64,000 nt of DNA from Takakia lepidozioides. Taxonomy: Eukaryota > Plantae > Bryophyta. How positions within the stretch are numbered: position 1 is the stretch's first letter; every line of letters starts with the position of its first letter. Below, one piece after another: positions 9,401 to 62,319 of the stretch. Below the pieces are notes generated by a model, which was not told the DNA's origin, did not search any database, and saw nothing but the letters and a program-made list of their open reading frames with translations. The translations under genes were made by a program, and so were the position numbers. Where the stretch lies: contig CM060733.1 in assembly GCA_030704615.1 (NCBI GenBank), positions 15,686,001 through 15,750,000 on the forward strand. The letters are read 5' to 3'.

Positions 9401-12400
9401 GAGACATACTCATACTGCACTCCCCTATCTTCGTCCATGGCCTCTGGCTCTCCTTCCTCAGATACCATCTCCACTTCAGGAGCAGAGCTATTGTCCACTA
9501 ATTGCACCCTCTCCTTCCACTTCTTTAAAGCATCACCGAGGCTTCTGTAAGGGTTTGCATCCAGTCTGTCCAAGCTGGGAGTTCCATTGGAGTCACGGTC
9601 AGGGTCTAATACAGAGCTTCTCTTGTCCCCTGTGATATTTTCCAAGGCTGATTGTTGGATTTGTGAAGGATTGTTGGATTTGGGCAGGACCTCTGCAGTC
9701 CCCATCTGCTCAGCTTCAGCCTCATCAATGCCATCATTTAATGGATCCCCATGCACACCGGAGATTGCGCCAGAAGTCCCTGTGCCACCAGATGCTCTAG
9801 CATCTTCATTTAATTTTGGATGCATTCCAGGATCCATCACTGGTGCCTCCTGCGATTCTGTCATTGGTTGATCATGTATGTGACCTTCATCCTGTTGTTC
9901 ACTACCATTTGCCTCGTCCTCTTCACTTCTGTTCTCTTCTCGGCCCTGCATCTCTCTGTCGATATGAGTGTTATCATTCTCTGTCTTTGTTTCTTTTTCT
10001 GCCTCTTCACTTTCATCCAGAGACTTCCCTTTCTGCTCCTCTAAATGGATTCCCTCATCAATGTCTGACAGCCCTTTAGACTCTTCATCGATATTCATGG
10101 CCTCAGACTGCTCTTCAGCACCACATTCTGGAGCTTCATCAGGTCCAGGTTCATTGTTCTCTCCTCCCATATCCTCCCCAGCTTCCTTATTCTCCCCTTC
10201 GCCGTCTAGATTCAAATCATCAGGGAGCTGAAGCTCTTCTTCAAAGCAAGGTTTGATCCCACTTGGATCCTCATACGATTCGTCTCTATCCATTCCTGAT
10301 TCTTCCATCTCCTCCACCTGGTCACTGTCATCTTGTGGTCCTGCAGGGGCTTCCGGGTCTTTAACACCTCCCTCGTTTTCTTCAGGGTCACCGTCCTTAC
10401 CACCACTGTCTTCCTGGTCCTCCTTGGCCCGTAGCTCCAGGTTGTCTTGGCTTGCACCTAAAGCCATTTACCCTTTCATGTCAGATATAGCATTTGAGTT
10501 GTTGCATTGCACCAGACTGATTTCCTGGATGGCGATATGGGGCAATCCCCACTGTGTAGATGTTTATGCCTAAGTTCTTGAGGAGGCCAAAGGACTGTTG
10601 CTCTGGCAGTTAGAATGTACTGATAAGTTGCCGCAGCCTTGTGGCCACTCTGGCAGTTGGAGAGTGTACTCATAAGACATTGTTTGCCATATCTGGCAGT
10701 TAGAGAAAGAGAGAGAGACAGAATTTACTTACAAGACATTGTTTGCCGTAGCCTTGCGGCCACAGACTCTGTACCCAGTTTGGGTGGAACAAAGAGAGAG
10801 AGATGTACTCATAAGACATTGTTTGCCATTGACTTGTGGCCATAGACCCCACGCCCAATTTGGGCAGAAGAGAGGAAGAGAGAATGTACTCATAGACTTT
10901 GTTTGCCGTAGCCTTGTGGCCATTGACACCACGCCCAGTTTGAGCGGAACACAAAGGGACAGAACCTACCTTCGTCAGGGGCAGATGCCGGCAGTAAGAC
11001 TTACCAAAAGGGCCTGGGCTTTTGTCTCAGCCTCGAGACTTGCAAAGTTGGTAAACGGGAGGTACAGGCACAATTCCATTGATAGATTTGAAGAGAGCGT
11101 CTCTCTGGTGAGAGAAGCCCGGACAATGAATCAGAAAGTGACTCAACGGACAATTGCACTCTCCCTTTCCTCTCTGTTCTGTTTGCTGTTCAAAGGTAGG
11201 CTTCCCCCCCTGAGTTTAGATTTCATTGTAGGGCCGAGAGTGGGTAGACACAGAGAGAGAGAGAGAGAGTCCAGCAACAGTGTACCTTACAGACTGGATG
11301 ACATTCCATGTCTGCTGGACGTGTGACCTTACCTGAAATGGGGGCATCCTTCTCATACTTTTCTTTCCCATCTTCCTGTCCTTCATGGTCATCGTCATTA
11401 TCATTCCACAGCTGTTCATCGATAATTTCGCTCTTGTCACCAACATCTCCCATTTTCGAATCAAGTTTTCCATCTTCATCCTGAGTGTCTCCCTCCTCCT
11501 CGGACTCATCCTCGCTAATGTCAAGCATATCTCCTTCAAAGTCTTGTTCCATCTCTATACCCTTCTCGCCCTTCTTTCCTACATCTTCAGTCGCAGGGGC
11601 TTCTTCATTCTGTACAAAAGAACCCTGAAATTTAGTGGAACCAGAAGTGAAGGACAGTGAGCTGTGAACAAGCAGACATGTTGCAAGACCCATCCATAGA
11701 CACTGATGACCAGAATCATGTGTAGGTAATAAGTAGCCATAGGCTTCCATGTCTATGGCTGAAATGTTGCCAGGATCTCACAAACTTCAGGCGGCATGCA
11801 TGCAGCCACTAGAGTTTCCTCAGACCGTACAATCATATTACCTTTTCTGTGCTCCCGAGAAGCTGGTCCTCATCCTCAATTTGGTCGCTGACATCTTTCT
11901 TTCCTTCCCCTTCTCCCATGCCTGTGCCATCTGCATCCTCAAACTTGGTGCCTCCCTCTTCACCCTCTTCTTCCTTCGTAACGCAAAAACCATCTGTGTA
12001 TAAAGCGCTGAACAAATTTGACAGAATGTAGCCCAGTTTTGACACCTGCCAGTCACAAATATTCCAAGGGCAAACCAGTTCAGCAAGTGGACAGCTACGT
12101 TTGTTGTGTGTATTGAGATATATTGCATGTGTGTCTCTACATCACCATCCCAATTGGCTAATTGCATGGATCCATTAGGAAAAGCCTCAATAACACGATA
12201 AGGACCCAACCAACGCATTTTTAATTTGCCCGGAAATTTTTGGAAACGACTATCATATAAAAGAACCAAATCGTGAGCTTTAAAGGCCTTTGGTTTTAAG
12301 TGGTTGTCATATTAGTCCTTGCGCCATAATTGAGTAAAGGAAAAAATCCTGAAGGAACTGAAAAGGAATCCAATAAGGTCGACAAAAGCAAAAGGAGCAT

Positions 12401-15400
12401 GAGAATGATGACTAAAAGAAAGCACGAGATAGCAAAGCATTTGTGATCTTCTGAACCTCTGTCAGGGATGAGCAGCCTCTGAAGAGACAATGTATCTCTA
12501 TATCGATGCCAGAGCTGAATGAACTCTAGACTCACATCAGAATGTACTGATAAGACGTTGTTTGCCGTAGCCTTGTGGCCATTGACCCCGCGCTCAGTTT
12601 GAGGGGAACACAAAGGGACAGAAACTACCTTTGTCAGGGGCTGACGCCGGTAGTATGACTTACCTTGGAACAGACAATTAATCCGAGTTTTCCAGATATC
12701 CTCTAGAAATCCCTTCACACAAGCACCAATCTGCTGTGTGTGGTTTGCCCAATAACTAGGCCCCAAAAGGGCCTGGGCTTTTGGCTCAGCCTCGAGACTT
12801 TCAAAGTTGGTAAACAGAGGATCAGGCACAATTCCCTTGATGGATTTGAAGAGGGCATCACTCTCGTGAGAGTACCCAGGACAATGAATCAGAAAATGAA
12901 TGTCTTCAGGTTGCCCACACAACGGGCAATTGCAATCCCTCTTTCTTCTCTGCATCTGTTTCCTGTTCAAAGGCGGGCTTACCCCCCCTGAGTTTAAATT
13001 TCAGTCTCGTGCCGAGGGTGGGTGAACAAACTCAGATCAGAGAGGTAACCAAAATGAAATAGATACGTCCAAGATAAAGAAGAGCTGTCAAAGTGAAGCC
13101 AACACACCACGACAAAAATCTTGGAAAGTGCAAAAATAAGAAATGGTGACCGTGAAGGGCTACTACTGCCTTCCGATGGGAAGGTGGACACCATTATGAC
13201 ATCCAACACACATGTGTGGTTTAGAACCCACAAGCACTAGTGAGAAGGTAGTATGCCCTGACCACTGGGCTATGTATTGGATTACTACTGACAATCTTAT
13301 TATTACTCCCCACTGACTTCATCAGTTCCCCGCAGTGGGTGCAGACGTTCCGACTTTCTGCCTCAACAGGGGAAGACTCAGCCAAGACATAGTCTTAGCA
13401 TTCGAATCAGAGAAACTCCAGACCTAAACACCCAACGAATGTACTCAATAAGACTTATTTGCCGTAGCCTTGTGGCCGCAGACCCTGCGCCCAGTTTGGA
13501 CGGACAAGAGGGAGCATCTACTTCTGTCAAGGGCTCACTCCAATAGTGGGACTTACCTTCATATCAACAATTAGTTCAGACTTTCCAGATTCCCTCTAGA
13601 AAGCACTTCACACAAGTATCAATCTGCTGTGTGGGCTGCCCAGCAATTAGACCCCAACAGGGCCAGGCCTTGACCTCAGCGTCGAGTTTTTGAAAGTTGG
13701 TGAACAGAGGTGCAGGGACTACGTTCTTGATGGTCCTGAAGAGGGACACACAGAGATGGAGAGAGAGAATGTACTCACAAGACACTGTTTGTAGCCTTGC
13801 GGCCACGGACCCTGCACTTAGTTTGGTTGGAACAAAAGGGAACAAACTCTAACTAGGGAGAATCCAACTAACACAGTGGGCTGAAGAAAGCTCCTCACTT
13901 TAAAAGTTTTTTCACTTTAATTTTCAATAGACCTAAGGCTGAAAGGCCATATATGCACTTGAGTATGGCAAACAGTTCTTGTTGTCTTCAAATGGAGATA
14001 AATCTCTAATATCTCCGAAAGAAATGAAATGGTACTTTATAACGTTTGCGGGAAGCTCAAAGAGCTTATGGGACACGAGGAAGAAAGAAAGAGAAAGACT
14101 GTACTCATAAGACGTTGTTTGCCGTAGCCTTGTGGCCATTGACCCTGCGCCCAGTTTGAGCGGAAACCAAAGGGACAGAACCTACCTCTGTCAGGGGCTG
14201 ACGTTGGTAGTAAGACTTACCTTGATACATAAAATTGATGTGGGTTTTCCAGATATCCTCTAGAAATCCCTTCACACAAGCATCAATCTGCTGTGTGTGA
14301 TTTGCCCAAAAACTAGGCCTCAGAAGGGCCTGGGCTTTTGGCTCAGCCTTGAGACTTTCGAAGTTGGTAAACAGATGTAGAGGCACAATTCCCTTGATAG
14401 ATTTGAAGAGAGCGTCTCTTTGGTGAGAGAACCCCAGACAGTGTCTCAGAAAATGAACACTGTCTTCAGGTTGCCCACACAACGGGCAATTGCACTCTCC
14501 CTTTCCTGTTTGCTGTTCAAAGGTAGGCTTCCTGCCCTGAGTTTAAATTTCAGTCTAGTGCCGAGAGTGGGTAGACCAAAGAAAGAAGAAAGAGAGGGGC
14601 CACAAGCAGCCCAAAAGAAAACTCTCCACGTCAAGGCCATTATGGCCCATGAACTTTATAACACCCACATAAAATGGAAATGAAAATGGTGCTTTATCGT
14701 CCGCGGAAAGCTCATAGAGTGTATGGGACAAAATGAAAGAAAACATGAGAGAGGAAACAAAACCGGAACCCAAGAATGAGAACTAATGTTCTAGTGATTG
14801 TCTAAGGGTGAAGGCCTCGTGCAGGTAAGCTGCCAAGCATTTCTGATCCTCATAGTGGAAGACCTCAGAGATTGGGTTCCACTGAATAAACAGTGGAATC
14901 TCCCACGGATCTCGTAGTATAGAGGGCAGTAGAAGAAGAAGTGTTCTTCAGTTTCAATTTCCTATGCGAGCTGGACAAATAGAAAGAAAGAATGTACTCA
15001 TAAGATGTTTGCCATAGCCTTGTGGCCATGGACCCCGCGCCCAGTTTGAGCGGAACACAGGGACATAAACCACCTTTGTCAGGGGCTGATGCCTGTTGTA
15101 TGACTTAGAGAGAAAACTCCGGCCGAGACCGGCGTAACTAAGAGCCACTTCGCCTCACGGCTACTGCCCCCTTTCGGGGGTGGGCCCTATTTTACCTTGG
15201 AACAGCTTTCCAGATATCCTCTAGAAATCCCTTGACACAAGCATCAATCTGCTGTGTGTGAATTGCCCAAATACTGGGGCCCAAAAGGGCCTGGGCTTTT
15301 GGCTCAGCCTCGAGAATTTCACGACATAGAAATGAAATGAAATGAAATGGTAATTTATAACGTCCGTGGAAAGCTCAAAGAGCTTATGGGACAAAAGAGA

Positions 15401-18400
15401 AAAACAAGAAAGAATAGACAAAACCACAGCCAAAAGTAGCCCAAAATCAACTCAAGGGATTGACTAAGGGTCAAGGCCTCATGTCAGATAAGCTGCCAAG
15501 CGTTTCTCATCCTCATAATGGAAGACTTCACTGAGAGATTGGGTTTCACGGAATAGACAGTTGAATCTCCCACGGATGTCATAGTCTAGGGGCCAATAAA
15601 AGAAGAAGTGTTCTTCAGTTTCGATTTCCCGGTTGCGGCCGGTGCACGCTGGGCATAGACGATCCTCCCATTGCAGGAAACAAAGAAATGAAATGACATG
15701 AATTGGTGAGAAAGAAAGAAATGAAATGCAATGGTGCTTCATACCGTCCGTGGAAAGCTCATAGAGCTTATGGGATGAAGGCCTTGTGCAGGTAGGCTGC
15801 CAAGCATTTTTGATCCTCATAGTGGAAGACATCAGTGAGAGTTTGGGTTCCACTGAATAAACAATGGAATCTCCCACGGATCTCGTAGTATAGAGGGCAG
15901 TAGAAGAAGAAGTGTTCTTCAGTTTCGATTTCCTGGCTGCCCCCTATGCAAGCTGACATAGGCGGTCCTCCCGTTGCAGGTTTTCCCATCTGCCAGTCTC
16001 TATCCATAGGTTGTGGGAACCCACCCTGAACCGCCCCAATGCCCTCAGGAGGGAAGGAGATAAGGATGCTGAAAGGTAATTTGGTCTCAAGATTCTATTG
16101 TCGCGGAGCACCAAGAATGTCTCTCGATAGAAGTGGAGCTTTGTTGTGAGATTGGGTAGCTTCCAAGTTCTTTGGACATGTAATTCCATAAGCTCTCTCC
16201 TAATGAGTCTGTTGCGGTCCTGTCTGGACGTGATGTCCACCTCATCTGGATTCATTGGTGATAGGAAAGCAGTAGAAAGTCCGTTACGTTGAAATAAACT
16301 GTCCACTCGAGCATACCAGGAGTTCCTGAAACCTGCAGCTTTGAGCCTCATAGATGTTGTGAGGGCCCTTGCCACGAGCCCCTTGGGTGGAAGGGCCTGT
16401 AATCTATGGAGAAAGATTGTAAGCCGGAAGAGGGCCTCGGATTGCAATGGTACACATGCGAACTCTGCCCCTAGGATCTGAGATGGAGTTGTGCTCCTGG
16501 CGCCAAGCATTGCTTGGAGAAAAGATGACTGTAATGGCTCCAAATTCTTTTCCCACCAGGAGACAGGGACACCAGGTGCCCAGAACTCACAACCATAGAT
16601 GGTAGCAGGGCTCACGACAGTGTCAAACAGCCACTTTTTGGTTGGGGGATGACGCAGATGTATTTGCTTGCATTTGGCCTGAAGGCGGACGGAGGCCGCC
16701 TTACCTTTAATCAATCTGTCCAAGGCAGTGGCTGCAGAGTGAAACTTGGGGGAGTGGATAACCAGACCCAGGTATCGGTATTTCACAATCTCAATTTCTT
16801 GCTGGTTGAAGATGAATCTACGATCAGCCTGGCCATTGAAGACCATGATCTTAGTCTTGCTAAGATTGACTTGCATCCCATAGTCTTTGCAGAACTGTTC
16901 CAAAATTTTGAGATGGCGTTGCAGGAAGACCGGGGATAGTGCCAAAAGGGCAACATCATCAGCGTAGAGGAGATCTGATTGCGTTGGTCCCCCATCCAAT
17001 GGTACCCCAACCCCATGGTTTTTTGATATGTAATTCTCCAAAGCGTTAATGTAGATCCCAAGAAATGAATGAAATGGTGCTTTATAACGTCCGCGGAAAG
17101 CTCGTAGAGCTTATGGGACAAAATGGAAGAAAACATGAGAGAGGACCAAATCGAGAAACCACAATTAATGTTCTAGCGATTGTCTAAGGGTGAAGGCCTC
17201 GTGTAGGTAGGCTGCCACGCATTTTTGATCCTCATAGTGAAAGACATCAGTGAGAGTTTGGGTTCCACTGAATAAACAGTGAAATCTCCCACGGATCTCG
17301 TAGTATAGAGGGCAGTAGTTCTTTCAATTTCCTTGCTGCGCCCTATGCAAGCTGGACATAGGCGGTCCTCCCGTTGCAGGTTTTCCCTTCTGCCAGTCTC
17401 TATCCGTAGGTTGTGGGAACCCACCCTGAACCGCCCCAATGCCCTCAAGAGGGAAGGAGATAAGGGTGCTGAGAGGTAATTTGGTCTCAAGATTCTATCA
17501 TCGCGGAGCACCAAGAATGTCTCTCGATAGAAATAAACTTCATAATGTCCACAGAAAGCTCAAGAAGCTTATGGGACAAAAGAAGGATATAAGAAAGAGT
17601 GGGAGGCCCAAAACAAGCAGCCCAAAAACCACTATCATCAGGAAACGAAATGGTAATTTAAAAAGAAATGAAATGAAAGGGTAGTATATACTGAGATCAG
17701 AAACTACAAGACAACAAAGATCACATCCAAAATTAAAGCAACATCGTAGAGGTGCCAAGAGCTAACCGTCCTCTGCATGTGGACATAATCAACCAAGATT
17801 TGCATCCCTGCAGCCTGTAGCATTGCCAATGGCACATGGATGCCACCCAGTAGCCTTGCTAATGTCATGGCGGTATTAGTTCCATCCTCCGCATCCACAA
17901 TTTCTTCCTGCAATAACCGGGCCAATAACATATTGAGGTTCCCCACTCCTTCAAGCCTCTCTTGCATTTCTATTCAAGAAGATTCACCTAATGCGTAGTC
18001 ATCAAAGGATTGTTGTCGAACCTCTGTTCACCCTCTCAATAGAAGTGGCATCTAAACACCTTTGCTGCCAGCATTACAAAAATTTCTTTCCTCTAACAGA
18101 TCACATGCTAAGAAACCAGTTTCTTCAACTTTTGCAGGTTGCGATTGAAGATTATTGAACTTACAGCAATAGAAAGGACCCTAACAACGGTGTTGTAGAC
18201 CCGGTCGAGGCGAAGAGCTGACATTTGCTCTGTAAGGCCCAAATCCCAACTCTGTATCGTCCCCACCAGTTTGGCAGTTCCCTCAACAGCTTCCGCAGAG
18301 TCGTTAGAAGTCCTTGAAATGTCTGTTCCCGGCTTCAGTTCACTGAGGTTTTGGACAGCCAAAAGTATCTCTGAAATCAGAGTGTCATAGAGTTCCATGA

Positions 18401-21400
18401 AAGGGATGAGCTTGCCTGTTGCCTCTGGATTTTGCTCTGTCGTTATCTCCGATTCAAAATTTCCTGACATGTCAAGCCCCTGAATACCATCCAGCATATT
18501 AACAGTCAATGACACTTTTAATCTGACTTTTAGTCTGACTACACGATCTCACCCTTTTCCGAGTGCGAAGAAGGAAAACCAAAGAAAACGTGATCAACAT
18601 ATCCGAAGGGAGAGGCAGAGAGAGGGAAGAGCCACCCATGCCATGGGTGTACATCACCTTGTGCAGCAGTTGTTGTAAGGTGTTCAGTCCAGGAACACAG
18701 TGACCGCTTGTCTGCTCACACATGCTCTGAACACTCTCTTCTGTGCTCTTGATTACAGAGAAATTGTCTTGCAGAGCCTGGTGCATGGCGGGGGTGATCA
18801 ACAAGGGCCAGCAGTCCTCTAGTGACTGTGAACCCACCATGTTGGTGCTGGGGATAAGGTGTCCATCAAGCACATTCTGCACAGGAAATAGGACAGCCAC
18901 TTCTAAATTTTGCTACAATACACCAAAACTCAGCTTGCAGTTAAATTTCTTGTCAATGGTTGTGACCTGCAAAGATCAGTCCTTGCAAGTACAGACCCAT
19001 AAACATCACCAAAATTTTATGTCATATACCTGCTACAAATATCTCAGCCAGAACCAACATATTATCATCTGAGCGGAAAGTCCCTATTCAACTGCTAGAG
19101 GCTGAATTTGTCGTAAATTTCAAAACCATTCAGCTAGTGCTGCGGAGTCTCTGTCCAAGCTCAAGTTGCTTACCAGCTGTGCACTCTCTTGCAGCAGACA
19201 ATATATACAGAAAATTACAAGTCAATCCATAGTTAACTACTGATGAAAACGTATGTAAAAGAAGCTTGAAACAGCTCTTCATCAGATGTAAAGATTGTCA
19301 AAATGACCGTGACTATACCTTGCAGCCTTCCAGATTGGCTAACAGTTTGGTAAGCGTAGTCTTGAGCAGACCTACTTCAGACTGCCCACTCTCAGAAGGA
19401 CACAGCAGTATTGAGTCTGATGTCTTGAAAAGCAGCAAAGCTTCTGCCATTACATGGCATAGCGAGTCAATGAGATCCTGCAAGCACCACACAATTAGCA
19501 TCCTTGAAAAGTCTCCATTGCCTCCAAATGTAAAGCAAACAGAAATGAAATGAAATGGTACTTTATAACAAAATGGAAAAAAAACAAGAGAAATGAAATG
19601 AAATGAAATAGTGCTTTATAACGTCCGCGGAAAGCTCAGAGAGGAGACAAAACCAAAGCCAGCAAGAAGCCCAAAAGCAACTACTGCGCGAGGACTTCAG
19701 TGAGAGATTCAGACCAACGGAATAGACAGTGAAATCTCCCACTGATCTCATTAAACAAAGGGCAATAAAAGAAGAGTTCTTCAGTTCCAATTTCCTGGTT
19801 GCGCCCGATGCAAGCTGGGCATAGGTGGTCCTCCCATTGCAGGTTTTCCCATCTGCGAGTCTCTATCCGTAGATCCGTAGAAAGAGAAATGAAATGAAAT
19901 GAAATGGTGCTTTATAACGTCCGCGGAAAGCTCGTAGAGCTTATGGGACAAAATGGAAGAAAACATGAGAGAGGAACAAACCAGAAACCACAATTAATGT
20001 TCTAGCGATTGTCTAAGGGTGAAGGCCTCGTGTAGGTAGGCTGCCACGCAAAGAGAGCAAGAAATGAAACGAAATGAAATGGAACTTTATAACGTGCGCA
20101 GAAAGCCTAAGTAAGGAACTTTATGACGTCCATAGGAAGCTCAGAGCTTAGAAAACAGAAAACAGACAGAAATGTGGGGACCCCACTAACTAGAGAAAGT
20201 TTACCTTCTGCTGCCACATCCACTTCCGTACCCCTCTTTGCCTAGGAAATGATGTTTCACCATTCCCTGCTACAAACACACAGTTTACTGGTCACAGACA
20301 GCCATGGTCACTGACATGGTGCATGATTCTCCAACTAAGAACAAATTCTTTCAGAGAAATGGTGCAACCTCAGCCTCAGAAGCAAATGTTAGATATTCTG
20401 TGGAACTCAAGTTGGACAAAACTAAGTTTGAACCTTTGATGTTTGGCACAGTTGATGTTTAAAACTAAAGTTTTTAGAAAGAGCAATGAGAGGAAAAAGG
20501 GGCAAAGGACTGACGGCTTACCAAAGGTGGCCAGAAGGCTTGTCAAGTTGGCAAGCGTGCCTAGCTTTGCAGTGAATTCATGAGCTGAGCGGCGCTGCTT
20601 CCGCTGGAAATAAAGCAGATGCTCCATGTACTTTTGAGACACCTCAACCTAGCACCAGAAAAACCAGATGCATGAATGAAAACATTACAAATGCCAGCCA
20701 CCATGACAATATGAAACTTCTTACATTGACTAGAGACACCAATATAGGAAAAGCTGCAAAGACAAAGTCTTGAGTTGTTACCTCCCGCAAGCTTAGAGCC
20801 TTGTTAAAATCCCGGGCATTCAGATGGAGACGGCGAACGAGTGTGATGTTCTTAAAGTAGTAGTCACTGGCCGCCTTCCAGCTGGTTTCAATCAATCTCA
20901 AGCTCAAACCTCTGTTCGCCTCTCCTTCCCCTTCCAAGTCTTGTTTCGTCTTTTGCCCCTTCCAGAAATTGAGCAATGTGCCTACTTCTGAAGGCGGCTG
21001 CCGAAACCAACTTCTGGGATCACGCTCATCCTGCAGATTGTATCGTCCAGATGGATCAAATACTTCATAAACCATTGTCATGCTTAGCAGCAACAAGGAG
21101 TAGTGGAAGTTGAGACACACTGCGGTACAAAAACATTTGTATAGACCAACCCTTTGACAGCAAAAAATTCAAAATATGAACCCTAGTCCAAAGGCTACAT
21201 AATCACACACCCAGAGCACAACAAGAGAAGATTCCTTGCTTTCACACCTTGGGCACAGCTGACTTGTTGTATGACAAACCAATCTGTCGCAATGCTTTCA
21301 GCAGATCGACCAGGGCCTTCTTCTTTACTGCTAGCCTCTTCTCCCCTTTCCGTAACTCAGCTGAACGTACAATTACAGCAGTGGCGATTGTTTCCAACAC

Positions 21401-33400: not shown

Positions 33401-36400
33401 AATCTTCTTGGCATTTGTTGTTTCTTCCAAGGCCACAAACATGTGTTATAGTTCATCCATCAAACCAGAATTATTTATTCAATCTGAAATTGATTCCTTA
33501 CCTTCTGACACTGGACTCCAATATGACTCACATAGACCTGAGACCTGACGTTCCTGGTCTTGGAGCTCCTTGGTATGAGCCAGCTGTGGGTGGCCTGCAA
33601 ACTTCCATAGCAATGGTTTTGAAAGAGGGTTCTGCCCAAGTGAAAATGGTTTATCAATCATTTCCACAAGATGTTGGAGAAAATCTGCTACCTGCCATCG
33701 CCACAACAGATGAACTTCAATGCTGTGGATGGCTGTTACACGGTCGCCTACCAAAAGCAGAGGCCCCACAACTGGAAACATTCTAGAGACTCAGTTAAAT
33801 ATATACAGCAAACTTTGACAAAAGACTTCAGTTCTTTAATGTCCTCTGATTATACAACTACATCTTTTCAACGCACAAATGACTGCCCCATCGCATAGGG
33901 CAGAACCAGCCCAAGGTATAGGTCTAACACCCCAATGAAAGAATCAGTAATTTCGGCCTGTTACTTCTCAAATCAAAGACCTGCTGGCTCGACAACTGAA
34001 TTCAAAAACAGAATGTCCTGCTATGAAGATACCTTCGTCACTCCAGATCCAGCAATGCCTGGCAACTCCATCAGATGCTGCAGGCTACGCTTACCCCAGC
34101 TCCAGCAAAACAGAAATGATTCAACATCAAACTTCGAGACACTCACATTTCTCCAAAGAGCTTCATGCCATTCTTGTAGTTTTCGAAAAGTAGCATCAAT
34201 TGAAGAGTCCCACACCAAGATATCCGCTAAAGTTAGGACCTCATCCTCCAACTTTCTCAAGGAAGTAAAGAAAGTATATAAATACTTCAAAGTTAACTTA
34301 GAGACTTGATGGGTATAGCTGTGAGATCTCTCTGCAGGATGAGTATATTGCCAATAAGATTGCACAATGGGGCTAGCTGACGAATTGAGACCCCATTTCT
34401 CCACCATCTCATATACCTCATCCTCTGACTCCCACTGTAGAAGGCTACGCCGCAGAGCTTGTAACTTGGAACAAAAAGAAACCACCTGACTCCAAGCTTC
34501 CCTAGCATCAACCATCTCCAGAGCCCTAGAATCATCAATGGGGGGAAATATCTGTAGAAAAAACTTTGGAGCAATTCCGTGGTCCATGCTCGGTCCCAGG
34601 CACTTTCTCCATGCTGCTAACCATTGACCTCTGACTGGGTGATCCAATTCCTTTTCTAGAGCAGTGGCAAGGCGCCTAAGCACTTGGGCATCCAGCATTT
34701 TCCCAAAAGTGTGGAGCCACTCTATGCGAAGCTTCAAATCAAGAAAGCTGGCTTGCTCTATCATCCAAAGGCCAGCAAACCACAAAGTTTGATCAAGTGC
34801 TAATGCATCCAGAGGAGCCACTGTTTGGTCCTTTGTCTCCCTTAGCACTCCCTCCACAGGATTGAGGAAATAGCGCAGAAGGGTAGCCGGGAAGTATGCT
34901 GCCATGGTTCCCTTACTCTGGAGCCACTCCAGAGGTTCTCTGGCCTGGATGAGTGAATGCCACTCCACACTAGTTTTAAAGGCAAAAAACTGTGCCCCTA
35001 GAAACCGCACAAACATACTATCACGTAAAACCATCGTCTCCTTGGAGTTCAGACAGTAGTGAGCCAGGGTCAAGGGGTTGGGCCAACCCCCTGGTAAGGG
35101 CAATGCCACTTTTCGCCAACTACTGACATCCACAAGTCCCACTGCACCAAGCGTTGTGTGAAACTTCTCCATGGCTGCTTTTCTTGCATCTGCACTACCA
35201 AGGCGATGGGCATAAGTTTGCTCCCAACTGCACTGCAGACTCCAGCCCAAGCTCGCACCCCTTTCAAGTAGCTGCTGCATCAAAGAAACCCACTGCCAAA
35301 CCTCTCGTAGAGACACCCGAGACCCACTATGTGACACATCCAGGAGCCCTTGAATGTCAACATGAGCTTTGCACATTGCCTGAACAAGGGAAGGGCCTGG
35401 TATTCCTGCATGTATTAACAGTTTCAGACTATCAAGATCCGCACTAGAGGCACCTCCCTGAAGTTCCTCCAAGATACCACTTTCCGGTGTCCCTGATTCC
35501 AACCAATCAGGTTGCAGCATGTAGACTTCGACCCCTCGGTTACGCATAGCCCTGGACACTTCCCCGTGGCTTGGGTCAACAGTGAGGAATAGACGAAAAT
35601 TTGGGTGGGCTCGTACAACCATGGCTTCTCCATTGACCAGCCCTCGCTCGTTGATCATGATTGTACCCCCTGGTTCCAGAAGCGGGTTCAACCTATCAAG
35701 AACCTGGAAAGACACAAGCACGTTCAGTATGCACAACTTGCCCACAAATTCATGCTTCATAGAACTCCAAAAATTAAATGTGGACTAGGCTAGTTCTGCT
35801 CTGTGATGTACAATGTTTGATGAATTGGATTCCTACCAATAGGTTGTGTAAATGACAGGAACACCACAATTCAATCATCCACACTGCACATACCCGGGAC
35901 TCCTAGTGCCTCAAAATCAAATAACTCATCCTTGAGTAAAGATCCTGGATGCTGTGATGACAGGACATGAAATAAAATGAAACGATACTTTATAATGTCC
36001 ACGGAGAGTCCAAAAGAGCTATGGGAAGAAAGAAGAAAAGGAGGAGCCAAGAAGACACATAATTTAAATCCCCAGCAAGCCTGCACTAGCAGTCCAATCC
36101 CAGTAGCGAACATAGGCCTATGCAACTATTCCAATATGAGGAGCTTCTCTGTGATTAGAGGAAAAATATCCCACAGAGACAGTACAGTTGTGGACCACAA
36201 GAAGTTGCAGAAGGCACCAAATATTGATCACCACAAGAACCATGCCACTTCATAATCGCTAAAGCAGGTCATCATACCGTTGGGTTGCAGAAATTGGCAT
36301 TGTCGAGTACCACCCAGTCGCCTCTTTCCAGTGCCTTCAAAAGGTCCCCTTCCACCCATTCAAACTGCCCTGCCTTCCCAAACTGCCCAAGGCTGCCCTT

Positions 36401-39400
36401 GATGTCTCTCAATCTCTGGAGCAAATGCCTGGGGTCCAGAGCACTATCTTCCACGACCATCCCAGAGATCACGACAGCCTGTCGCAGCTGCTCCACAGTG
36501 TGTAGTAACATGTCCACCGCTAAGGAGTCTACGACCCCTTGGTCAAGTTGTTGATCTAAGCTAAGTACATCCAAACTAGATTGTGTTCCACGGGTGACAA
36601 TACACTTGTGAAAGGCAGCCCAAGAGCCCAGTAAGTTCTTCACAAGATTCACCTTCAAATCTGCCCTCAATGTGTCCCCAGACACAGTAAAACAAAAGCT
36701 AGAGATTGTCTTCAAAGAATCATAGGCACACCTTACAGTCTCTTGCCAGCGGCGAAACAGATCATATTGCTCAAAGCAGCCGAGTAATTCGGTTGTATCA
36801 GTTGCACTAGAGAGGGAAAACTCGCGCACGGGGTTACCAGTCAGTGCTGCTAATAGGCGAACAAGGGAGGTCTTGCCAGAGGCAGGGGGTCCTACCAATA
36901 TGCACATCCAACCCTGTGCCACACAGTGCATAACTGCTTCTAATCTGTTTACCAAACCAGGAAGAAGCTGCAGCTGTTTACCAATGCTGCCTTGTAATAA
37001 TGGTTCCTCCGTACGTGGGAGGCTTGCCAGCCCCACATGGAGTATATCAGGGTGGACCGAGACCATTGGACATGTGTCAATCTCCACAGATGTCCCAAAC
37101 ACATGCTGGAAAAGACTTAGCACACGACGCCGATCTTCTGTGGTGCGCATACGTTGTAAGTAAATGACATCCAGAAAGTTCTCTGGAGCGTCACAACGCA
37201 CTTGACACCCAGACGATCCATCTCGTGCTGCTGCAGAAGTATTTCATTCATATAAGCTTTACAAGGAGATACAAAAGACCAGCATGGATCAGAAGGGAAG
37301 ACCTCTCTGCTATGAATGACACAAAGGAAATCACCTCACCGTCGCCTGCTATGTAATGACTGTAATGAATGACTAACTATCCATCACAAGAGGTACATAT
37401 GACCTCCAACAACAACCACCCTCTACCTCCAAAATTTTCCAAAGAAGAGCATATGACCATTGGGAGACCCACCTTCAATAAGCTGACACCACCGTAGGAT
37501 GTCGCGGAGATTGAACTCCCACGGGACCCCCGAATGGCCATAGGCGTGGACCACCATGGTGTCATGGTGCAAGCGTGCATTGAACTCGATCATCTTAAGC
37601 AGCAAGGGCTCAGGGATGGATGGATGCAATGCATTCGCAATGAACATGAAGTCATCTTCTGATAAAGCGTCCATGTAAACCTGGAGAATTTGAAAAATCC
37701 ATAAGATTATGGTCAAACGGCCATATATGATACTGTGAAGATATATGCAAACCATATTACAGGAGAAAACTGTAGCAACTGATAGGTAACAGACAAAAAC
37801 CCAGCAAGATCACCTACTGTTAACCCCTACCAAGTTTTACTGACTGATGTTTGGATCTGAAGTAACCTTCTGCACAAGTTTGTGTTGCTTGGAGCTCGGA
37901 AACTCACCTTGGTAAAACGGTTGAGGAATGACTTTGGAAGGCCCTTGCGGCCCCCTCCCTGTGACAGGGGATTCTGGCACGCAAAGACACGGAAAGTTGG
38001 GGGGCATTTAAAACTGCGGCCCAGTTCTGGTATGAAAACTTCCCCCCGGTGATCCAAGCATGCATTCAGTCCCTGCATTGTTTTACAAGCAATTGGCAAA
38101 TTGAATCATTATGATGACGAAAGTACTTTTTGGCACTTGCAATGTGCACCATCAAGACAATATCCACAGAGGATCAAAATGCATTTAACAAAGGTTCTGG
38201 AGCCTGTGGATGACTATTGCAACAGCAGTACAGACACGACTTCCATCATATAGCATTCAAAACATTCTTTGACATGGTATGATTTCATTCACAAAGAGGG
38301 TACCTCTAACACTGACTGTGATGCAAGATTCAGCTCATCCAGAAGCACCCAATTGCCTGCTTTCAAAGCCTGCCATACAAACACGTTGGAATACATAAAC
38401 ATGTTGAAACTCCCTCACTATCAAGACGCACAAAATATTCCAGTACAAGGAGATCCACATCCTGACTACAACATGGAAAACTTCAATTCAAACAAAAAAC
38501 CTTCCTGTTAAACATCAAAACAAAAGAAACAGTCACCTGTAGAAAGACGCCATCAGACCAGCGGAACTCTGCACCTTTCCCTCCTTCAACTGGCAAATCT
38601 GACCCGAGCAAATCCATTATGTCGGTCTGCAATGACCATGACACAACCTCATATACTTACCAAGCAATTAGATCCTATACTCTGAGATCCTGTATGAAAG
38701 CACTATTTGCAGATGATTTGAAAGAACCTGAAGGATCCTGAAGGATCCAATTTTGATCAGCTTGTAAAGCATTTTCATTTGATATATTCTTTCATGACAA
38801 CAGAGAATAAATCTTTCTTACAGGCAACAGCCTTGTCTTAGCCACAAGTACCTTGAGCCAGAATTCAATCAGAGCTGTTGTCACAAGTACGGGCACTGTT
38901 GGCCAACTTGTCCTAGGGCCTTGAGTGAAAAACAACAGCTCATAAATTTCTTTTTAAAGTTCTAACAAGGAGAATATTCGAAGGAATGTGAGTAGAAATG
39001 ATGGGAAAAGTAAAAGAAAGATCATACCTGCTCAGACAGATTAATGCGGACAAGTGTGTGACCTGAGGATGAAGCCAAGGCTGCCACTAGACTAGTTTTG
39101 CCCACCCCTGGACTTCCCTCCAGCAGCACTGTCATCAAAACACCAGCAAATATTTGTTGTTAAATTGCAACAGAAGGATCCTTAACCTGGAATTGACCAA
39201 GTATGGAAAAGAGAAAGAAAGAACTTCAACTTATAACCTCCAGATGGGGCCATGAGCACACATTCGACAGCGTAGAGCAAACAAATGAGCATATCAGGAT
39301 AAAGTCAAAGGGCCTCAAGCAGGTGGGCCGCAAGGCACTTTGGATGTTGAAAGCTGAAGGCCTCTGCTAAGGAGTAGGAATCTCTAAGAAGACAATAGTA

Positions 39401-42400
39401 TCTCCCACGTATCTCGAAATATGCAGGACAAGAGCAGAAGTGCTGCTCTGATTCACTTCCTCCAACGCACAGATAGGGCAGATTTTAGTGTCTCGTTTTT
39501 CATCTCTGCTTTTGAGAAGTTTCCACTGTCGAATTTGAAACCGGTGGAGAGCTGTCTTTCTGGTCCCCATGTTTGTTGCACATAAAACTTCATAAGATAT
39601 TCTCACATCGGCCTGTTCCTCACATTCTTAGGAAGTATGGGCTTCTGGAGGTGGGTTGAAAGTAGGGACACTACTGGCATTGAGATTGTGGTATGCAAGG
39701 AACTTTCTCAAGAGGTACAACAGCATGTCTTGGATCCTTTCTCAAGTGCTGAGTTGTGCACAGTGCCCTCACCGGCAGCCAGTCTTGTGAAAGGGACCAG
39801 ATCCAAAGAGGAAGATGACAATTCAGAAAATGGCCTCATACTCCAGGGGTAAGGAGTAGAATTCCACCACAGTATATGGAATTTTTCAAACAAATTTCGT
39901 GGAAGAACATCAATTAAAAGAGCCTACTTGCCAGGCTTTGATAACTGCATGGCCCGCAAAATTCGCAAAGCATTCCGACTTGTTGTCGGTGCTGCCAACG
40001 TGAAACTACTCCTTTGCAAAACTTGATCGCCTGCCGGACCAACCATAGCAATGCATCAGCATTGGTTTGTGTAGAGAGTTGAGAGATACCAGCTTGCCAT
40101 GTAAATGAATGCCTTCTAGCCTTCTCCTTTCCATTCCAACTACATGTTTTACATGCAGTATCTGCTATCAGGAGGAGTCTTTGCAATACCTCTTCTTATG
40201 AAGAAAGGATGGATGCCAAACATGTTGTTGCTGTGGACGATTGGATGGGAGCTTACGTCAACCTCCATGGAATTAGGGCCACTTGCAGTTCCAGGTTCAA
40301 ACCTTTGGTCTTCAAGCGAAAGAGCCTCTGAAGCCACAACCCTTTCATCCTGTGCTCGGTAGAGTGGCATCAACAATGGACAACCTCAGTGAGTTAACAT
40401 CACAATCAAAAGCAATAAGTTCAACTGCTCTCACCCCAGGATCCCATTTTGAAAATACAGAAAGAATGTGAAGATGTACCAGATATGATTTACCGTTCAC
40501 GAGCAAACCAAAGGGGAGAACAGGATTGAGTAATAATTTCAGTAACAATTTGAGGACAAACCTTCTCCAAAAAACACACATATTTGTACCAAGCAACAAG
40601 TTCTGCCCAATAGTTTGCCTACATTTTATCTACGCATACTAAAAGATCAACATACTAAACAATCAACATGAGCACATACTTCTGGCAGTTGTTGCAACAG
40701 ATGGTTCAAGCAATCACTCTTCAGCTGTTGAGCTGCTGCATTAGACAATCCCATCCCTGTCCCAAAACCGCCCCCAGCATGTCATACCTCTGAATTAACC
40801 TCAGATTCAGTTCCATTACCTCCCTACCCATACATTCCAGGCAAAAGCCAGCAAAAACAACGATTTTCATAATCCGTTAGCAAGAGTACATAATTCATTT
40901 TGCATCATCCCAATTGTACCAAACCCAATGCCATCGAGGAGGACCACGAATGCGCCATGAACAAATGCGGCAAATTTGCCAATCTCCTTTTCTGCCACAT
41001 TGATGTATGTTATCCAGGCCAAAAGATCTCGCACAGACAGAATCCTTCCGCTTTCATGGTGATGTTGGAACCACTGTTCAGAACAGAAGGGAGCGCCACA
41101 ACAGTACCTCAACAATCCATACTCAATGATAAGTGAAAAGCCTACTCTTAAGACATTCAAGTCAGAAACAGTGCAGGAACTTGCAAATATTTGGCAAAAA
41201 CTGGCCAATACACTCTGCTCTGATCTTGAAAGCAAGATTGGAGGCATAAATCAAAGCATTAGCAAGAGTCATAATTTAAACTCAAATATGTGAAACTGAG
41301 ACTTCAGTAAGAGACAATTTAATGAGGTTAATACAAATCACCAAGTATCAGACAGATGTGCACCTGCCAGAACTGAAGCAGGGGATCTGCAAGACTAATA
41401 AGCTCCGGTTTTGAAAACCTGAAAAACATCAACCATCATTAAGCACACAGTAAACTAAGCTAAGATTTTCCATCTAAGGTACTTTCAAAAGATCTTGGAC
41501 AAGGTTTTGGAGGGTCAATATCTGCTCAGCTGTTGAAAGATTTTCTATACACAGGGATGCCAAGTATGGTGGGTGTGGGTTTTGACAAATAAGTTCCAAG
41601 CTCCACATATGGGTGGTAGATTTCCTCTGTAGTTAGCCCCCATACGCGTTCCAGAAAATGAGCATAAGCAAGTTGTGCAAAGCAAACCTGTCGCTGACAA
41701 TGCTCTTCAAGTCAAGTGGGTCACTGATAGGGGGGACCCAGATTTCAGTGAAGCGATTACGTAGTGCTGGGGAAAGCTCTTTCTTGCCAAAATCGCCCCC
41801 AGGGTTCATGGTGGCCAACAGACAAAAGTTTGGATGAGCAATAAGCTCCACCACAACAGGACCCCCTTTCTCTGCGAGAACCTGCCACAACATCAACCAA
41901 ACGAAATATGAAAATACAAAATTCGATGTTGATGAGGGACAACGACAACGTTTGCGTGATCTGGTTTATGTCGAAACAAAGATAAACCGTCTCGCCATTT
42001 CCCGAAGAAAAACACGTTCCTGTTCTATTCTTTCTTGCACTGGAAACAACAGGCAAATTGAAAGTGAAGAACATTTCTTGTTTGACTCTCCTCTCTACTA
42101 TGAGATTCATGTGAGATTAGTTTGTCTATTCTGAGATACCCTCTCACAGACATCTTTCATTACAAGGATCAGAAATGCATTGCAGCATATCTGCATGAGA
42201 TGTTGACTCTTAGACAACCCCTTGAGCAGTAGTTGTTTCTGGGCTGCTTGTGGAGGGACCCTCTCTTTCTTGTTTCTTTCTCTTGTCCCAGCCACTCTTT
42301 CAGCTTTCCTCGAATGTTAAAATGTATCTCTTCTTTTCGTTTCTTTGCTTTTCTTTTCCAAGAAGAACTTCTGAACCTGCCTCTCAACTTCCTGCCTTTC

Positions 42401-45400
42401 TACACAAATCATAGTGAAGGAATCCCTTTCCTAACATTGGTTACAGCAGCTCACTAACCAAGAGGCGTTTCGGTTCCAACACACTGTTCAGCCTTTCCAA
42501 CACACTGTCATCAGCAAGTGATATCTCATCAACGAGGAAAAAATCACCATCCCGCATGGCCTGAACTAATGGCCCATCATGCCAAACAAAGAGTGACTGC
42601 CACTCCTTTTGTAAACCTGAAAGCTCCTTCTCTAGTGCTTCCACCATCTCCACTTCTCCCTTGGACTTCTCATTCCAGTTTTGATTAAGTTTCTTCATGT
42701 TGGAAAGAGCCTGCCTGATCATTGTCAGAGCCACAGCAGCATCCTCAATCTTCGAAGGTAACTGCAAAGGAAAAAGCCAACATAGTCTTAGGATTGAAGA
42801 TAATAAGATAAAAATACTTACCTCACACACCTGCTGCAACACAACTTGTTCACATAGAATAACCCAAGACCCTTGTATCTCCAATTCATGTACTCAGTAT
42901 AGCAAAACAAGTATGACAACCTTGCCTATACAGTATTCCTACAGGCAATAAGAAAGTGCACAAGTAGACACCTTGTGAAACATATTTTAAGTCCATTCTA
43001 GAATGTTACTACATTTCACTACTTTTTACACTTGACCTCTTGAAGAAGACCCACACTTGATGTACATCACCTACCCAAGCCCTGGGTGTATGGATCCCAA
43101 CAATTTTTAGAGTGGACATCACAAACTGCAGAGGTACAAAAAGAACGAACTAGCTGATAAATGCAAACCTACCTCACCCTTGCAAACTTCCTGGAACAGG
43201 TTCAAAGAAGACACCTCCCTGAGGGCATTCTGGAATTTCACGCCAATACTATCCCTCTCCCGCACAGGTCGGAGACCCTACAGAGCAGCCCCAAATTAGT
43301 TCACACCAAGTTTCTCCTTGAAGCAGGTTCTCAAAAGACCATGGCCAAAACAGAGTCTTACAATTACTGCCTGTCCAACCTATTAGAACAATTGTACTCT
43401 GTAATCAGTGGCAATCCAATTTTATTTCTTTCAGAGACACAATTGATAGGGGAGAACACTTACACCGAGAAAGTCAGATGTCTCAGAGTATTGATGGCAA
43501 TTAAGAATATGAAGACGCTGCTGGAAGAGCAAAGCGAGGAGCTGACATATGGTGGTTTTCCCACACCCAGTTTCTCCAATCAGTAACACTGGTTCACAGT
43601 GCCGGATGCAGTGCTCCACCAAATTGAATAGCCGTTTCATGCTCTTAGTCCACACGATCCTGGGTAGCCAAAGTTCAAAAAATTATAAAGCATGGTCTCT
43701 AACCGAATGTTCTGCAGCCCACATGATTTCATTCTGTGCTTCTAGGTGGAAGATAAAAGTGCCGAGGACACTTAACCCAGAACACAACCCTAACTCATAA
43801 CTCGTCTGAAAATCACATCCATTGGCATTATAAATTTGTAAAGCAATGTCAAATGCAACAATAGAGCTATTCAACACTTTTTCTCCTAGAGGTGAAGGAC
43901 ACAGCATATAGGAGAGACTAGTCTGCCAAAGTTTCTCGAACATTACATTGACATCACCAGAAAAGTGAAAGGAGCCAGATCCAGGTTCGCGCAATCATCA
44001 AGCCAGGTTTGTCAAACTTACTTGCCAAATGATGTCAGGGACTCTGGAGACTTCAAGCATTCCTGAAGGGTTTCCAGCTTCTCTGAACCTGCAATCTGCT
44101 TAATACCAGAACCATGTCATTTCCAAATCTGTATACTGAAAGATGTTTTGTCGAATATCAACAACTCGACATGGGCCTTCATTTCTGAAAGCTGCATTAC
44201 CCTAATATAGAGGATCTAACCAAGAAACCGAAGCTATGATGAGCTCTGGCACATCTAACCTTGCCTCCCATGTCTGCCATACCTGGTAATACAAAGCAAG
44301 AAGAAATTCATAGTAAATGGGTAACAATTGCAGAACCCTTACTCACCTCATGAAGCTGGTTGACATCAATTTTCACACGCATGTGTTTCTCCAAGACTGT
44401 CTGCACAACCGCCTTCTCATTCCCATCACGCAACCGTTCAGCAAGGAGCATGTAGCCATCCCTGGCTAGTTCTTCGTAGCCATTTCCGTGCCGTTCAGCC
44501 CACCTGAAAAGATCACGAGAGGTGATGAATCCATGTTTCCCAGCAAACACTTTGCTGCTCTGACGATGCCGCTGTAAGTCCTTCATTACCTCAACCATCT
44601 TTCCAGCATAGCTCCCTGGAATCTGACAACGCTTTTCCAGTATCTGGCGGAGCTCATCATCTGGGATGTCATCAATATGAAGCTCCATGAAACGATTGCG
44701 GAAGGCACGCGATAGCACTTTTCGGCCACCATAAATGCCTGGGGGATTTTGTGTAGCAAAAAGCATGAAATGAGGGTGGGGTTTCACTGTGACCTGAAGC
44801 TCAGGCACAAAAAGCTCTCTGTTGTCATCCAGCAACCGATTTAGAGCCTCTAATACGTCCGAAGGAGCCAGATTCAACTCATCTAACACAATCCAATATC
44901 CCTTGCGTACAGCTTCCACCAGAATCCCTTCCTGGAAGACAAGTTTTCCTGAAGAATCAGTCACATACGACCCTAGGTACTCCTGCAAATCGGTGTGCTC
45001 ATGGTTGTTGATACGGACAAAACGGTGCCCTGTTATGGTAGCCAGGTATTCAACCAGGCTTGTCTTTCCGCTGGAGGTTGGGCCTTGCAATAGGACAGGG
45101 TACTTACGCACAAATACTGCCCTTGCCAAATTCTTTAGATGGTTACGAATTGTCTCGGTCAACACATAACGGTCCCGGGATTCCAGTGACGACCTGTGGA
45201 CAAGTGTCGTCAGTGTACATGGTGTTTCATGCAAGGAGCTATGAAGCGCAATCACCACAACAAGTAGCACGGAAATTAGCTTAACAAACTTTTGAAAATT
45301 CGAGCCATTATAGTAATTTGGAAGTCAAGGGGACCATTGACAGGTAAGAGAGGTAAGCCAATAGAAAGGTAAAATCACCTTCCCCCTCATGAAAGGGGCA

Positions 45401-46985
45401 CAATTTGACAAGCTTCATATATGCTAAAATGCTTCCAAATTTTTAAAAGGTAAATTGCAGGAAAATTTGAGACGAACCTGGAAGGGTATGCATGCCCACT
45501 CTCCACCCAGAAATGTTCAAATAAGACATGTTCAGGGCTTGGCTGGGGTGGAACCTTGAGGAGTGCTTTGAGGGCTTTAGCTGCCGCCAATCCCGTTTGC
45601 TTGAAAAGTGCGGCACTGATGAGCTGTTCCATGACCAAAGCACTCGGGCTGTCAAGAAGGGTCAAAAAGGACATGCAGATTCCATCATAAATGGCTCTCT
45701 GAAATCCATAGATGGGCATGGCAGCGCGGGTGTATTCAAGTGCTCGAGCAAGTGACCGCAGACTGTATTGTGGCTTTTGACCGGCTCCATCCAAGAGTCG
45801 AGTCTCAGCTTCCTTGCGCGCCTGGAGGTAAAAGTTGACAATCTCTTCTACTGGTGGGGATGGAAGGGCCCCCTCAAGGTACTTATAGACCAAGGCATGC
45901 AAGTCTTCTCTTCTTGTCAGTTCATCAATATAGAGTTCCGTGAACCGGTTTTTCAAGGCAATGGGAAGGTCATGTTTTCCAACATCTGTCGCAGGGTTCA
46001 TGCAGCCAAAGATGCGGAAATTAGGATGCCGAACCACACTTTCAACGTCGCCTCGTTCTGTCAGGCACAGGGAGCCTCCCTCACCTTCCAAAACTCCAGT
46101 TAATCTTTCTAGAGTCTCAACCGGGGCTAGATTCACCTCATCCAACAAGAGCCAGCGGCCCTCCCGTATAGCCTTAATTAGAACTCCCTCAACAAAGGAG
46201 AATGCAAAGCCTGTCTTTGCAGCCTCCACTTGGCGCTCAGCCTTGTGGAGATCGATCGAAAAAGCCCGCCACTTGTCATGCAACTGATCATTGAGAGGGC
46301 GCTTCCTCTTTGGGGTCTGCTCCTCATCCTTGTGTCCATTGTCGTCACGCATCACCATTTTTGTGGATGGAGGGCCAGGACCAAGTCCCATCCCGTTGGA
46401 TGGAAAGGATGCCCCCACCAGCTTGGCCACTGAAGCAACCACTGTGCGGAAGGCTTTGAGCAAACGTTCCCATTTCTTCCTCTCTGCCAAACGCTGTACT
46501 TGCTCCAGCAGCTCTGCATTCTTCTGTGGGTTTTACCCACAAAACATTGGTGAATTTGGAGCCAAGGACATGAGGAGAACCAACATGGCTACAGGAATTC
46601 TCTCTTCTCCAGAAAGCAGCATTCTCTCCCTCTACCTCCCTTCCGCTCCCCCTCCCCCTCCCCCTCCCGCTCCCTCTCCCCCCCCCCCCTCTCCCTCTCC
46701 CCCCTCCCCCCTCCCCTCCCCCCCTCCCCTCCTCCCCCTCTCTCTCTCTCTCTCTCTCCCTCCCTCCCTCTCCCTCCCTCCCGCTCCCGCTCCCCCCCCC
46801 CCCCCCCCGCTCCCCCCCTCTCCCCCCCTCGCCGCCCCTCCCCGCCCCGCCCGCCCCTCCCCCGCCCCCGCCACCTCCCTCTCCCCCGCCCCCTCCCCCG
46901 CCCCCTCCCCTGCCCTCTCCCTCTCCCCCGCCCCTCCCCCTCCCCCTCTCCCCGCTCCCCTCTCCCTCGCTCTCTCTCTCCCTCC

Positions 46986-47055
<70 letters not shown>

Positions 47056-59849: not shown

Positions 59850-60010
59850 TATGTTATGGTAAAGGCATATACCCTCTTATGAGTGGTTGTGGGTTCAAAC
59901 CACCCTGTTGGTTGTTACAAACGTGTCCACCTTCCTACCTGAAGGCAGGAGCCTTTCTTGGTCAAGTGACACCATAAGTTACGCCTCCTTCGGAATCGCG
60001 TCCACCTTTG
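59850..60010 (+). mobile_element. tRNA-derived SINE-like element with structured 3' module
   Basis: B-box-like GGTTCAAACC (~59892) followed by gtgtccaccttcc...gaaggcaggagcc...aagtgacaccataagttacgcc. Confidence 0.6.
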
Positions 60011-60040
60011 GTATATGTTATCAACAAACTGCTATCGAAT

Positions 60041-61860: not shown

Positions 61861-62010
61861 GTGGACCAAGTGGGAATGGGCACATACCACTTTGGAAATG
61901 GTTGTGGGTTCAATCGATTGGTGTCGCAAAGGTGTCCACCTTCCGGTAGAAAGGTAGTAGCCCTTCGGCATCAAATGACACCATTATTTCCGCTTCCTTG
62001 TCGAGGCGTT
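61861..62010 (+). mobile_element. tRNA-derived SINE-like element with structured 3' module
   Basis: TGGACCAAGTGG (A-box-like), GGGTTCAATC (B-box-like), module at 61931-61982, followed by (TA)n(TG)n. Confidence 0.6.
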
Positions 62011-62319
62011 ATATATTATATATATGTGTGTGTGTGTGTAGCTAAATTTTTAGTATGTGGCACTACCTGCATTCAATGTTGAATTTTTTGCTCAAAATTA
62101 CATCTTCCTTTATGGTGCCGAATGGCTCTACACCAATTTTATACAGAATTGGAGTGAATGCTTATCTGAGCTGGTCACCACCCTCCTTCCAATTTTCAGT
62201 ATTTTCTGAATGCTTCTCCTTTGCATGTCCTGACTAGGAAGGTAGGTCAATTGGGACTTCCAATTTCTGGGCAGCCCAAAATGTTCCTCAAAAAATGATG
62301 AATTGAGTTGTTTTCTTTT

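Follow-up and report, generated by a model that had tools for sequence, protein, structure and literature searches.

The recurrence of a short, foldable sequence at the ends of otherwise different insertions raises the question of what is being conserved, the sequence or the structure, and by what machinery such a sequence may be spread. We addressed this question in a 64 000 nucleotide stretch of the Takakia lepidozioides (Bryophyta) genome (assembly GCA_030704615.1, contig CM060733.1, positions 15 686 001 to 15 750 000 of the forward strand; the whole stretch is called the window below). An earlier reading of the sequence alone had drawn attention to a three-way-junction RNA module, present in the window in five copies, and had proposed that it was selected for its fold and placed at the 3′ end of different retroposons. 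Covariation and position both support that proposal, and the module is a structured RNA under selection for its fold. It is probably the conserved, folded 3′-terminal domain of a family of retroposons without long terminal repeats (non-LTR), and by analogy would serve as the recognition element for the reverse transcriptase (RT) of a partner long interspersed nuclear element (LINE).

Five copies of the module in the window

A covariance model (R1) was built on the proposed fold from three copies only (B, D and E) and was run against both strands of the window with filters off. Exactly five matches were returned, the next best scoring 11 bits; copy A was recovered at 15116–15188 on the minus strand with 41.8 bits (E 5e-8). 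A broader model (R2), to which copies A and C had been added, still found only the same five. Each of the five copies listed in the sequence-only reading was located in its place. Their positions, with those of the parts of copy A, are collected in Table 1. The module occurs in two forms, one within a ∼150 bp short interspersed nuclear element (SINE) with a tRNA-Arg-like head, to which copies B–E belong, and the other in a very abundant lineage with the same fold and other stem sequences, represented here by copy A (A-type).

Conservation of the fold

In the model-fitted alignment of the five copies 86.5% of the cells were paired, and both partners had changed in nine pairs. The observed covariation was reached in none of 500 column shuffles, and sliding the partners by one to three columns gave between zero and four such pairs. 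When copy A was compared with the majority sequence of the SINE copies, identity was 52% in paired and 78% in unpaired columns. Of the pairs that differed, seven did so on both sides and two on a single side, and pairing was retained in each; two apparent breaks were no more than helices that are shorter in copy A. The junction letters C-A, C-AGUA and AA-G-U were the same in the A and SINE lineages. A control model, made from the identical alignment with the base pairs removed, gave copy A 8.0 bits (E 0.2), and ∼34 of the 42 bits that link copy A to the SINE module are therefore contributed by base pairing. The earlier claim that the copies share one fold but differ in sequence is upheld by this difference (41.8 bits for copy A with the structure model against 8.0 with sequence only) and by the retention of pairing in all seven double changes.

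Architecture of the module

From 5′ to 3′ the module consists of P1, P2 without a linker, P3 with AGUA/GAA at its base, a single-stranded AUAAGUUACG linker, P4, AGU and a simple-repeat tail. Minimum-energy folding of the copy A core gave the three-way junction at −22.1 kcal/mol (z −2.2), and the same junction was obtained for the SINE core when P3 was entered as the inferred undecayed GCCC-UUCG-GGGU. The decayed copies B, D and E, folded as they stand, did not reproduce P2 and P3. RNAalifold, run on the alignment, predicted P1, P2 and an extended P4; P3, at which the decayed copies differ, was not predicted. The modelled detail of the junction is ambiguous, since it may be drawn either with a bulged C and A-U and C-G pairs or with a C7-G52 pair.

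The description of five copies with an AGUA/GAA S-turn was overstated. Two of five copies (A and B) have the motif intact; it reads AGGA/CAA in copy D and AGUA/CAA in copy E, and copy C has lost part of this region to a deletion in P3 and the 3′ junction. Among A-type copies from the rest of the genome the AGUA/GAA letters carried no variant at 5% or above, except for a change of G15151 to A at 5%. The remaining A-type variants were CpG transitions, and two of these convert a G-C pair to G-U. Copy A has GUGA as the loop of P3, most A-type copies elsewhere in the genome have GCAA, and the SINE has UUCG; the loops do switch between the GNRA class (to which both GUGA and GCAA belong) and UUCG, as had been remarked.

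A tRNA-derived SINE carries the module

Copies B–E share sequence upstream of the module, the upstream part of copy B aligning with the heads of the other three. A head of ∼70 nt resembling tRNA-Arg is followed by a short linker and a module of ∼80 nt, in total ∼150 bp, and the element ends a few bases past P4. The assignment to a SINE of this length follows from the shared heads and from copy D, which is complete and lies between direct repeats of 15 nt with one mismatch (59843–59857 and 60007–60021); the end of its module is 5 nt from the end of the SINE, and the target-site duplication begins immediately after. For copy E a duplication (TATATGTG) is ambiguous owing to its microsatellite context, and a search for target-site duplications at copies B and C found none. 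With its threshold lowered to 85% of the default, ARAGORN recognized a cloverleaf resembling tRNA-Arg(TCT) in the head of copy C; at default thresholds the head was missed by both ARAGORN and the Rfam tRNA model. C, D and E show an A box (TAGCCCAGTGG) together with a B box of the form GGTTC(T/A)AA(A)CC, which in copy C reads GGTTCTAAACC. Judged from these sequence features, the element is a tRNA-derived SINE with a head of the RNA polymerase III (Pol III) type and the module as its 3′ half.

Copy A is an insertion of the module alone

Copy A interrupts a repeat, designated U, which occupies 14981–15107 and 15205–15321 on the minus strand. At this point three to four paralogues of U in the window run straight through CCAAGG|TAAGTC, without the 84–87 nt, and in each of the DNA runs of the organism 15107 is joined to 15207 in 10 contigs or more, with ∼26 other letters between them and no module. 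Because copies of U are empty at this site, both in the window and across the genome, copy A is a discrete insertion of 84 nt. A module standing alone fits a retrocopy that was primed at its 3′ end and stopped early, as expected of the recognition element proposed here.

The A-type lineage was followed in contigs assembled from these runs, and the figures from them imply no copy number. The A-type module was present at 80% identity or above in hundreds of contigs. In the sense direction these copies consist of the module, then (CT)n and then unrelated flanks (seen as loose ends at 15107); the module is preceded by a T-rich run of ∼10 nt and, before that, by sequence that agrees poorly between copies. 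The tail of the module is thus a short simple repeat at the extreme 3′ end and not poly(A). Pol III would be halted by so long a T run, and the bulk of these copies therefore probably did not arise by read-through from a tRNA head. A LINE 3′ untranslated region (UTR) is a reasonable guess for their source. Copy A stops exactly at the T run that is seen upstream elsewhere (15190/15191), which may reflect a tendency of the RT to end there or may be coincidence.

The LINE present in the window

Fragments of one unclassified LINE are scattered over both strands (Table 1). The C-terminal part of its reverse transcriptase lies at 15947–17110 on the minus strand (Pfam RVT_1, E 4e-9), with a CX2CX11HX4C knuckle downstream and a stop ∼42 residues further on, which leaves no space for a C-terminal restriction-like endonuclease. 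The nearest database proteins, one of them from a mollusc, were 23–30% identical; no solved structure matched the LINE protein by sequence, and a search of the other open reading frames of the window found no further LINE domains. Six independent tails of this LINE run …TTATAAAGCACC(ATTTC)n and then into unrelated flanks. As all six end in this way without the module, the window's own LINE was rejected as the partner.

Searches for relatives and known families

Rfam was searched over the whole window at gathering thresholds, and no family matched. Around copies A, C, D and E the search was extended to E values of up to 10, again without a family that matches the module, tRNA, 5S rRNA and the self-cleaving ribozymes included; copy B was covered by the gathering-threshold scan. 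The module had been put forward as a candidate undescribed RNA, and its absence from Rfam at both levels agrees with this.

JGI metagenomes yielded 8 matches to a pattern based on the junction, IMG/VR yielded 2 and prokaryote genomes (596 Gb) 12, all by chance: matches outside the genome scored at most 17.6 bits with R2, as against 58–96 bits for true copies. The closest available plant contig, a 14 kb Logan contig with the best homologue (62% identity) of an F-box gene in the window, contained no module. In the literature, short motif strings matched only primers, by chance, and no paper was found on LINE tails containing loop E or on SINEs of seed-free plants.

Table 1. Module copies, parts of copy A and LINE fragments (positions counted from the first nucleotide of the window)
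Feature	Position	Strand	Remarks
Copy A	15108–15191	−	84-nt insertion, module alone; R1 41.8 bits; possible TAA target-site duplication 15192–15194 / 15105–15107
Copy A, core three-way junction	15141–15188	−	Minimum-energy fold is the proposed structure
Copy A, P1	15183–15188 with 15141–15146	−	5′ strand AGGGCC, 3′ strand GGCUCU; bulged C15182; A15181-U15147 pair
Copy A, P2	15176–15180 with 15167–15171	−	CCCCC-GAAA-GGGGG
Copy A, closing pair	C15166-G15148	−	Core fold
Copy A, internal loop	15162–15165 opposite 15149–15151	−	AGUA opposite GAA; core fold
Copy A, P3	15159–15161 with 15152–15154	−	GCC-GUGA-GGC
Copy A, linker	15133–15140	−	UAGUUACG; conserved; aligned by R1 to the same part in B, D, E
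Copy A, P4	15119–15132	−	CCGGU-CUCG-GCCGG; 3 pairs changed on both sides; predicted independently by RNAalifold
Copy A, AGU after P4	15116–15118	−	Aligned by R1 to B, D, E
Copy A, tail	15108–15115	−	Short, U/C-rich, UUUCUCUC
Copy B	52694–52772	+	Module of a diverged SINE copy; R1 101 bits; head-like sequence upstream, ∼52590–52693
Copy C	13117–13278	−	SINE; tRNA-Arg(TCT)-like head 13206–13278; degraded module 13117–13192; R1 32 bits, R2 57.8 bits
Copy D	59858–60006	+	Complete SINE, ∼149 bp; module 59922–60001; R1 88.8 bits
Copy E	61864–62012	+	SINE, boundaries approximate; module 61931–62009, then (TA)n(TG)n; R1 93.8 bits
Unclassified LINE, fragments	15330–17110, 17060–17560, 19540–20050, 14669–14962	−	RT part, knuckle, tails
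Unclassified LINE, fragments	42036–42349, 49287–49401, 50602–50747	+	Same LINE

Comparison with known systems

Folded 3′ tails taken over by SINEs from 'stringent' LINEs have been described in eel (UnaL2; PMC1636434) and zebrafish (L2; PMC4176376). The module resembles UnaL2/UnaSINE1 and ZfL2 in that a conserved fold is placed at the extreme 3′ end and followed, in place of poly(A), by a short simple repeat, the tail is common to otherwise differing elements, and 5′-truncated copies retain it. It differs from the tails of UnaL2 and ZfL2, each of which is a single stem-loop, in some cases with an internal loop, in combining a three-way junction, a loop resembling loop E and a separate terminal hairpin. 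A SINE with a borrowed LINE tail is a known arrangement; the architecture is unusually elaborate and the host lineage differs.

Among plants and green algae, LINE/SINE pairs include TS SINE with RTE-1_Stu, ZmSINE2/3 with LINE1-1_ZM, and SINEX of Chlamydomonas with RandI/Dualen (PMC3747384). These SINEs are also tRNA-headed, with simple-repeat tails other than poly(A) that in their case are LINE-derived. Here, in contrast, a (CT)n-like tail occurs in a seed-free land plant, and no sequence relation was found in a comparison that did not include the Chlamydomonas tails. According to reviews, the SINEs of land plants mostly have poly(A) or T tails and depend on L1 or RTE (PMC9033089). The Angio-domain (Seibt et al. 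2020, as cited in PMC9033089) is summarized there as a 37 bp sequence at the 3′ end of angiosperm tRNA-derived SINEs. It is similarly a short conserved 3′ domain of tRNA-derived plant SINEs; the elements bearing it, unlike those studied here, are angiosperm SINEs with T- or A-rich ends.

In its modelled fold the module would further resemble the sarcin-ricin loop and 5S rRNA: one hairpin arm, closed by Watson–Crick pairs and standing beside a three-way junction, has AGUA on its 5′ side and GAA on its 3′ side, the orientation that these strands also have in the sarcin-ricin loop and in loop E of eukaryotic 5S rRNA. Against a relation to 5S rRNA, the module core is 52 nt and not ∼120 nt, the Rfam 5S model gave no match and the motif is intact in two of five copies. 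The 3′ UTR of the R2 element, a multi-helix fold, is bound specifically by a LINE protein of the restriction-like-endonuclease kind, which thereby starts target-primed reverse transcription. It is longer than the module and folded otherwise, and would be relevant if the partner were a LINE of that kind.

A folded tail as a proposed recognition element

In the mechanism that we propose, the RT of a 'stringent' partner LINE would bind the fold of the module and target-primed reverse transcription would begin at the simple-repeat tail. Any RNA with the module at its 3′ end would thereby be copied into the genome, and where copying stopped early, insertions of the module only, such as copy A, would result. 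Binding by the RT, and likewise the identity of the partner LINE, we infer. The earlier suggestion that the module was borrowed from a partner LINE is sound in kind, such borrowing being known for other LINE/SINE pairs, but the sole LINE in the window does not have the module.

Several observations weigh against a recognition role. No LINE bearing the module lies within the window, and no relatives appeared beyond this genome in the metagenomic, viral and prokaryote DNA and the one plant contig searched. The covariation is essentially one comparison, of copy A with the SINE lineage, to which is added the swap of C-G to U-A in copy E, at a loop-closing pair. Furthermore, the GAA strand has become CAA in copies D and E, and for this reason the S-turn may be dispensable in the SINE lineage.

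Among other explanations, the module might serve the RNA that carries it, through stability, through 3′-end formation or Pol III termination, or through recruitment of a host protein by the motif resembling loop E. The fold is conserved, as this would require, UUUU follows directly after the P4 hairpin in copy A, and the layout of closing helix, hairpin arm and arm with loop E near the junction recalls a 5S rRNA in miniature (a likeness that serves as a lead only). However, 5S and all other Rfam models fail even at E 10, the U run after P4 is missing in copies D and E, and a module-only copy in a strictly 3′-terminal position is predicted by a priming signal and not by a stability element; we consider such a role unlikely. 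That the structure is inherited but inert, two lineages having descended from one structured ancestor with pairing left over or due to chance, is more doubtful still. Just two lineages could be compared, insertions decay neutrally, and the variants seen in the reads are mostly CpG transitions. On the other hand, the double changes without exception keep their pairing while the junction letters are identical, the covariation far exceeds that of the slid controls and is reached by none of the shuffles, and the tetraloops change only from one stable loop to another, whether of the same class (GNRA to GNRA) or of a different one (GNRA to UUCG).

The sequence-only reading had also entertained a self-processing RNA, while noting by eye that hammerhead, HDV-like and twister cores did not fit. 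Processing of the retroposon transcript by a small self-cleaving ribozyme would account for a three-way junction with conserved junction nucleotides, which by eye is superficially like a type III hammerhead. The junction strands CA, CAGUA and GAAGU do not, however, match the hammerhead core (CUGANGA, GAAA, UH), and neither hammerhead, HDV-like and twister models, in accordance with that misfit, nor those of twister-sister, pistol, hatchet and hairpin gave a match at E values of up to 10 around copies A, C, D and E. The SINE copies moreover keep the head joined to the module, and the module to P4 and the tail. Because the tRNA-like head remains attached in B–E, cleavage 5′ of the module is not obligatory, and the suggestion of self-processing, for which no ribozyme family speaks, is very hard to credit.

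With the recognition element for a partner LINE as the preferred reading, one extension may be offered tentatively, as a possibility somewhat less likely than not. The three-way junction with its loop resembling sarcin-ricin could represent a new structural class of RT handle, belonging to a Dualen/RandI-like LINE with two endonucleases that has persisted in a land plant without seeds, and captured by a tRNA-Arg-derived SINE. If this were true, a compact RNA tag of ∼50–80 nt, defined by covariation, would be sufficient for mobilization.

Repeat U and other contents of the window

Repeat U is far commoner than the module in the DNA runs; paralogues lie at 12539–12855, 14084–14410, 13434–13745 and 10867–11005. 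It holds CCAAG|GTAAGT, a perfect look-alike of a splice donor, and has a 3′ hairpin (CCATGGCC-ACAA-GGCTATGG), ending in a T/C-rich simple repeat. Between 10870 and 15400 it forms tandem units of ∼1.5 kb with fragments of the LINE tail, one of each per unit. Copies C and A sit within this block, apparently the product of segmental amplification at this locus.

An intron-less host gene resembling the F-box gene At5g39450 lies at 224–2317 on the minus strand and is about equally distant (57–59%) from its counterparts in moss, liverwort, lycophyte, fern and Ginkgo. A midasin gene (AAA_5 / AAA lid) is represented by several exons at 36272–47080, also on the minus strand. A GC-rich hairpin at 60216–60368 (minus strand) scored 21 bits with the MIR1023 precursor model, for which the gathering threshold is 90 (E 0.19), and is probably a chance match.

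Significance

As a practical matter, the covariance model could be used to mask thousands of short insertions that are missed by a search with sequence only, as the scores of copy A illustrate (42 against 8 bits). The module also offers a small, delimited RNA with clear mutational predictions, concerning compensatory changes in the stems, the junction letters and the S-turn, for the study of how a plant LINE RT chooses its template. For plant biology, a structured tail other than poly(A) in a plant without seeds suggests that a LINE and a SINE have formed a 'stringent' partnership in this lineage.

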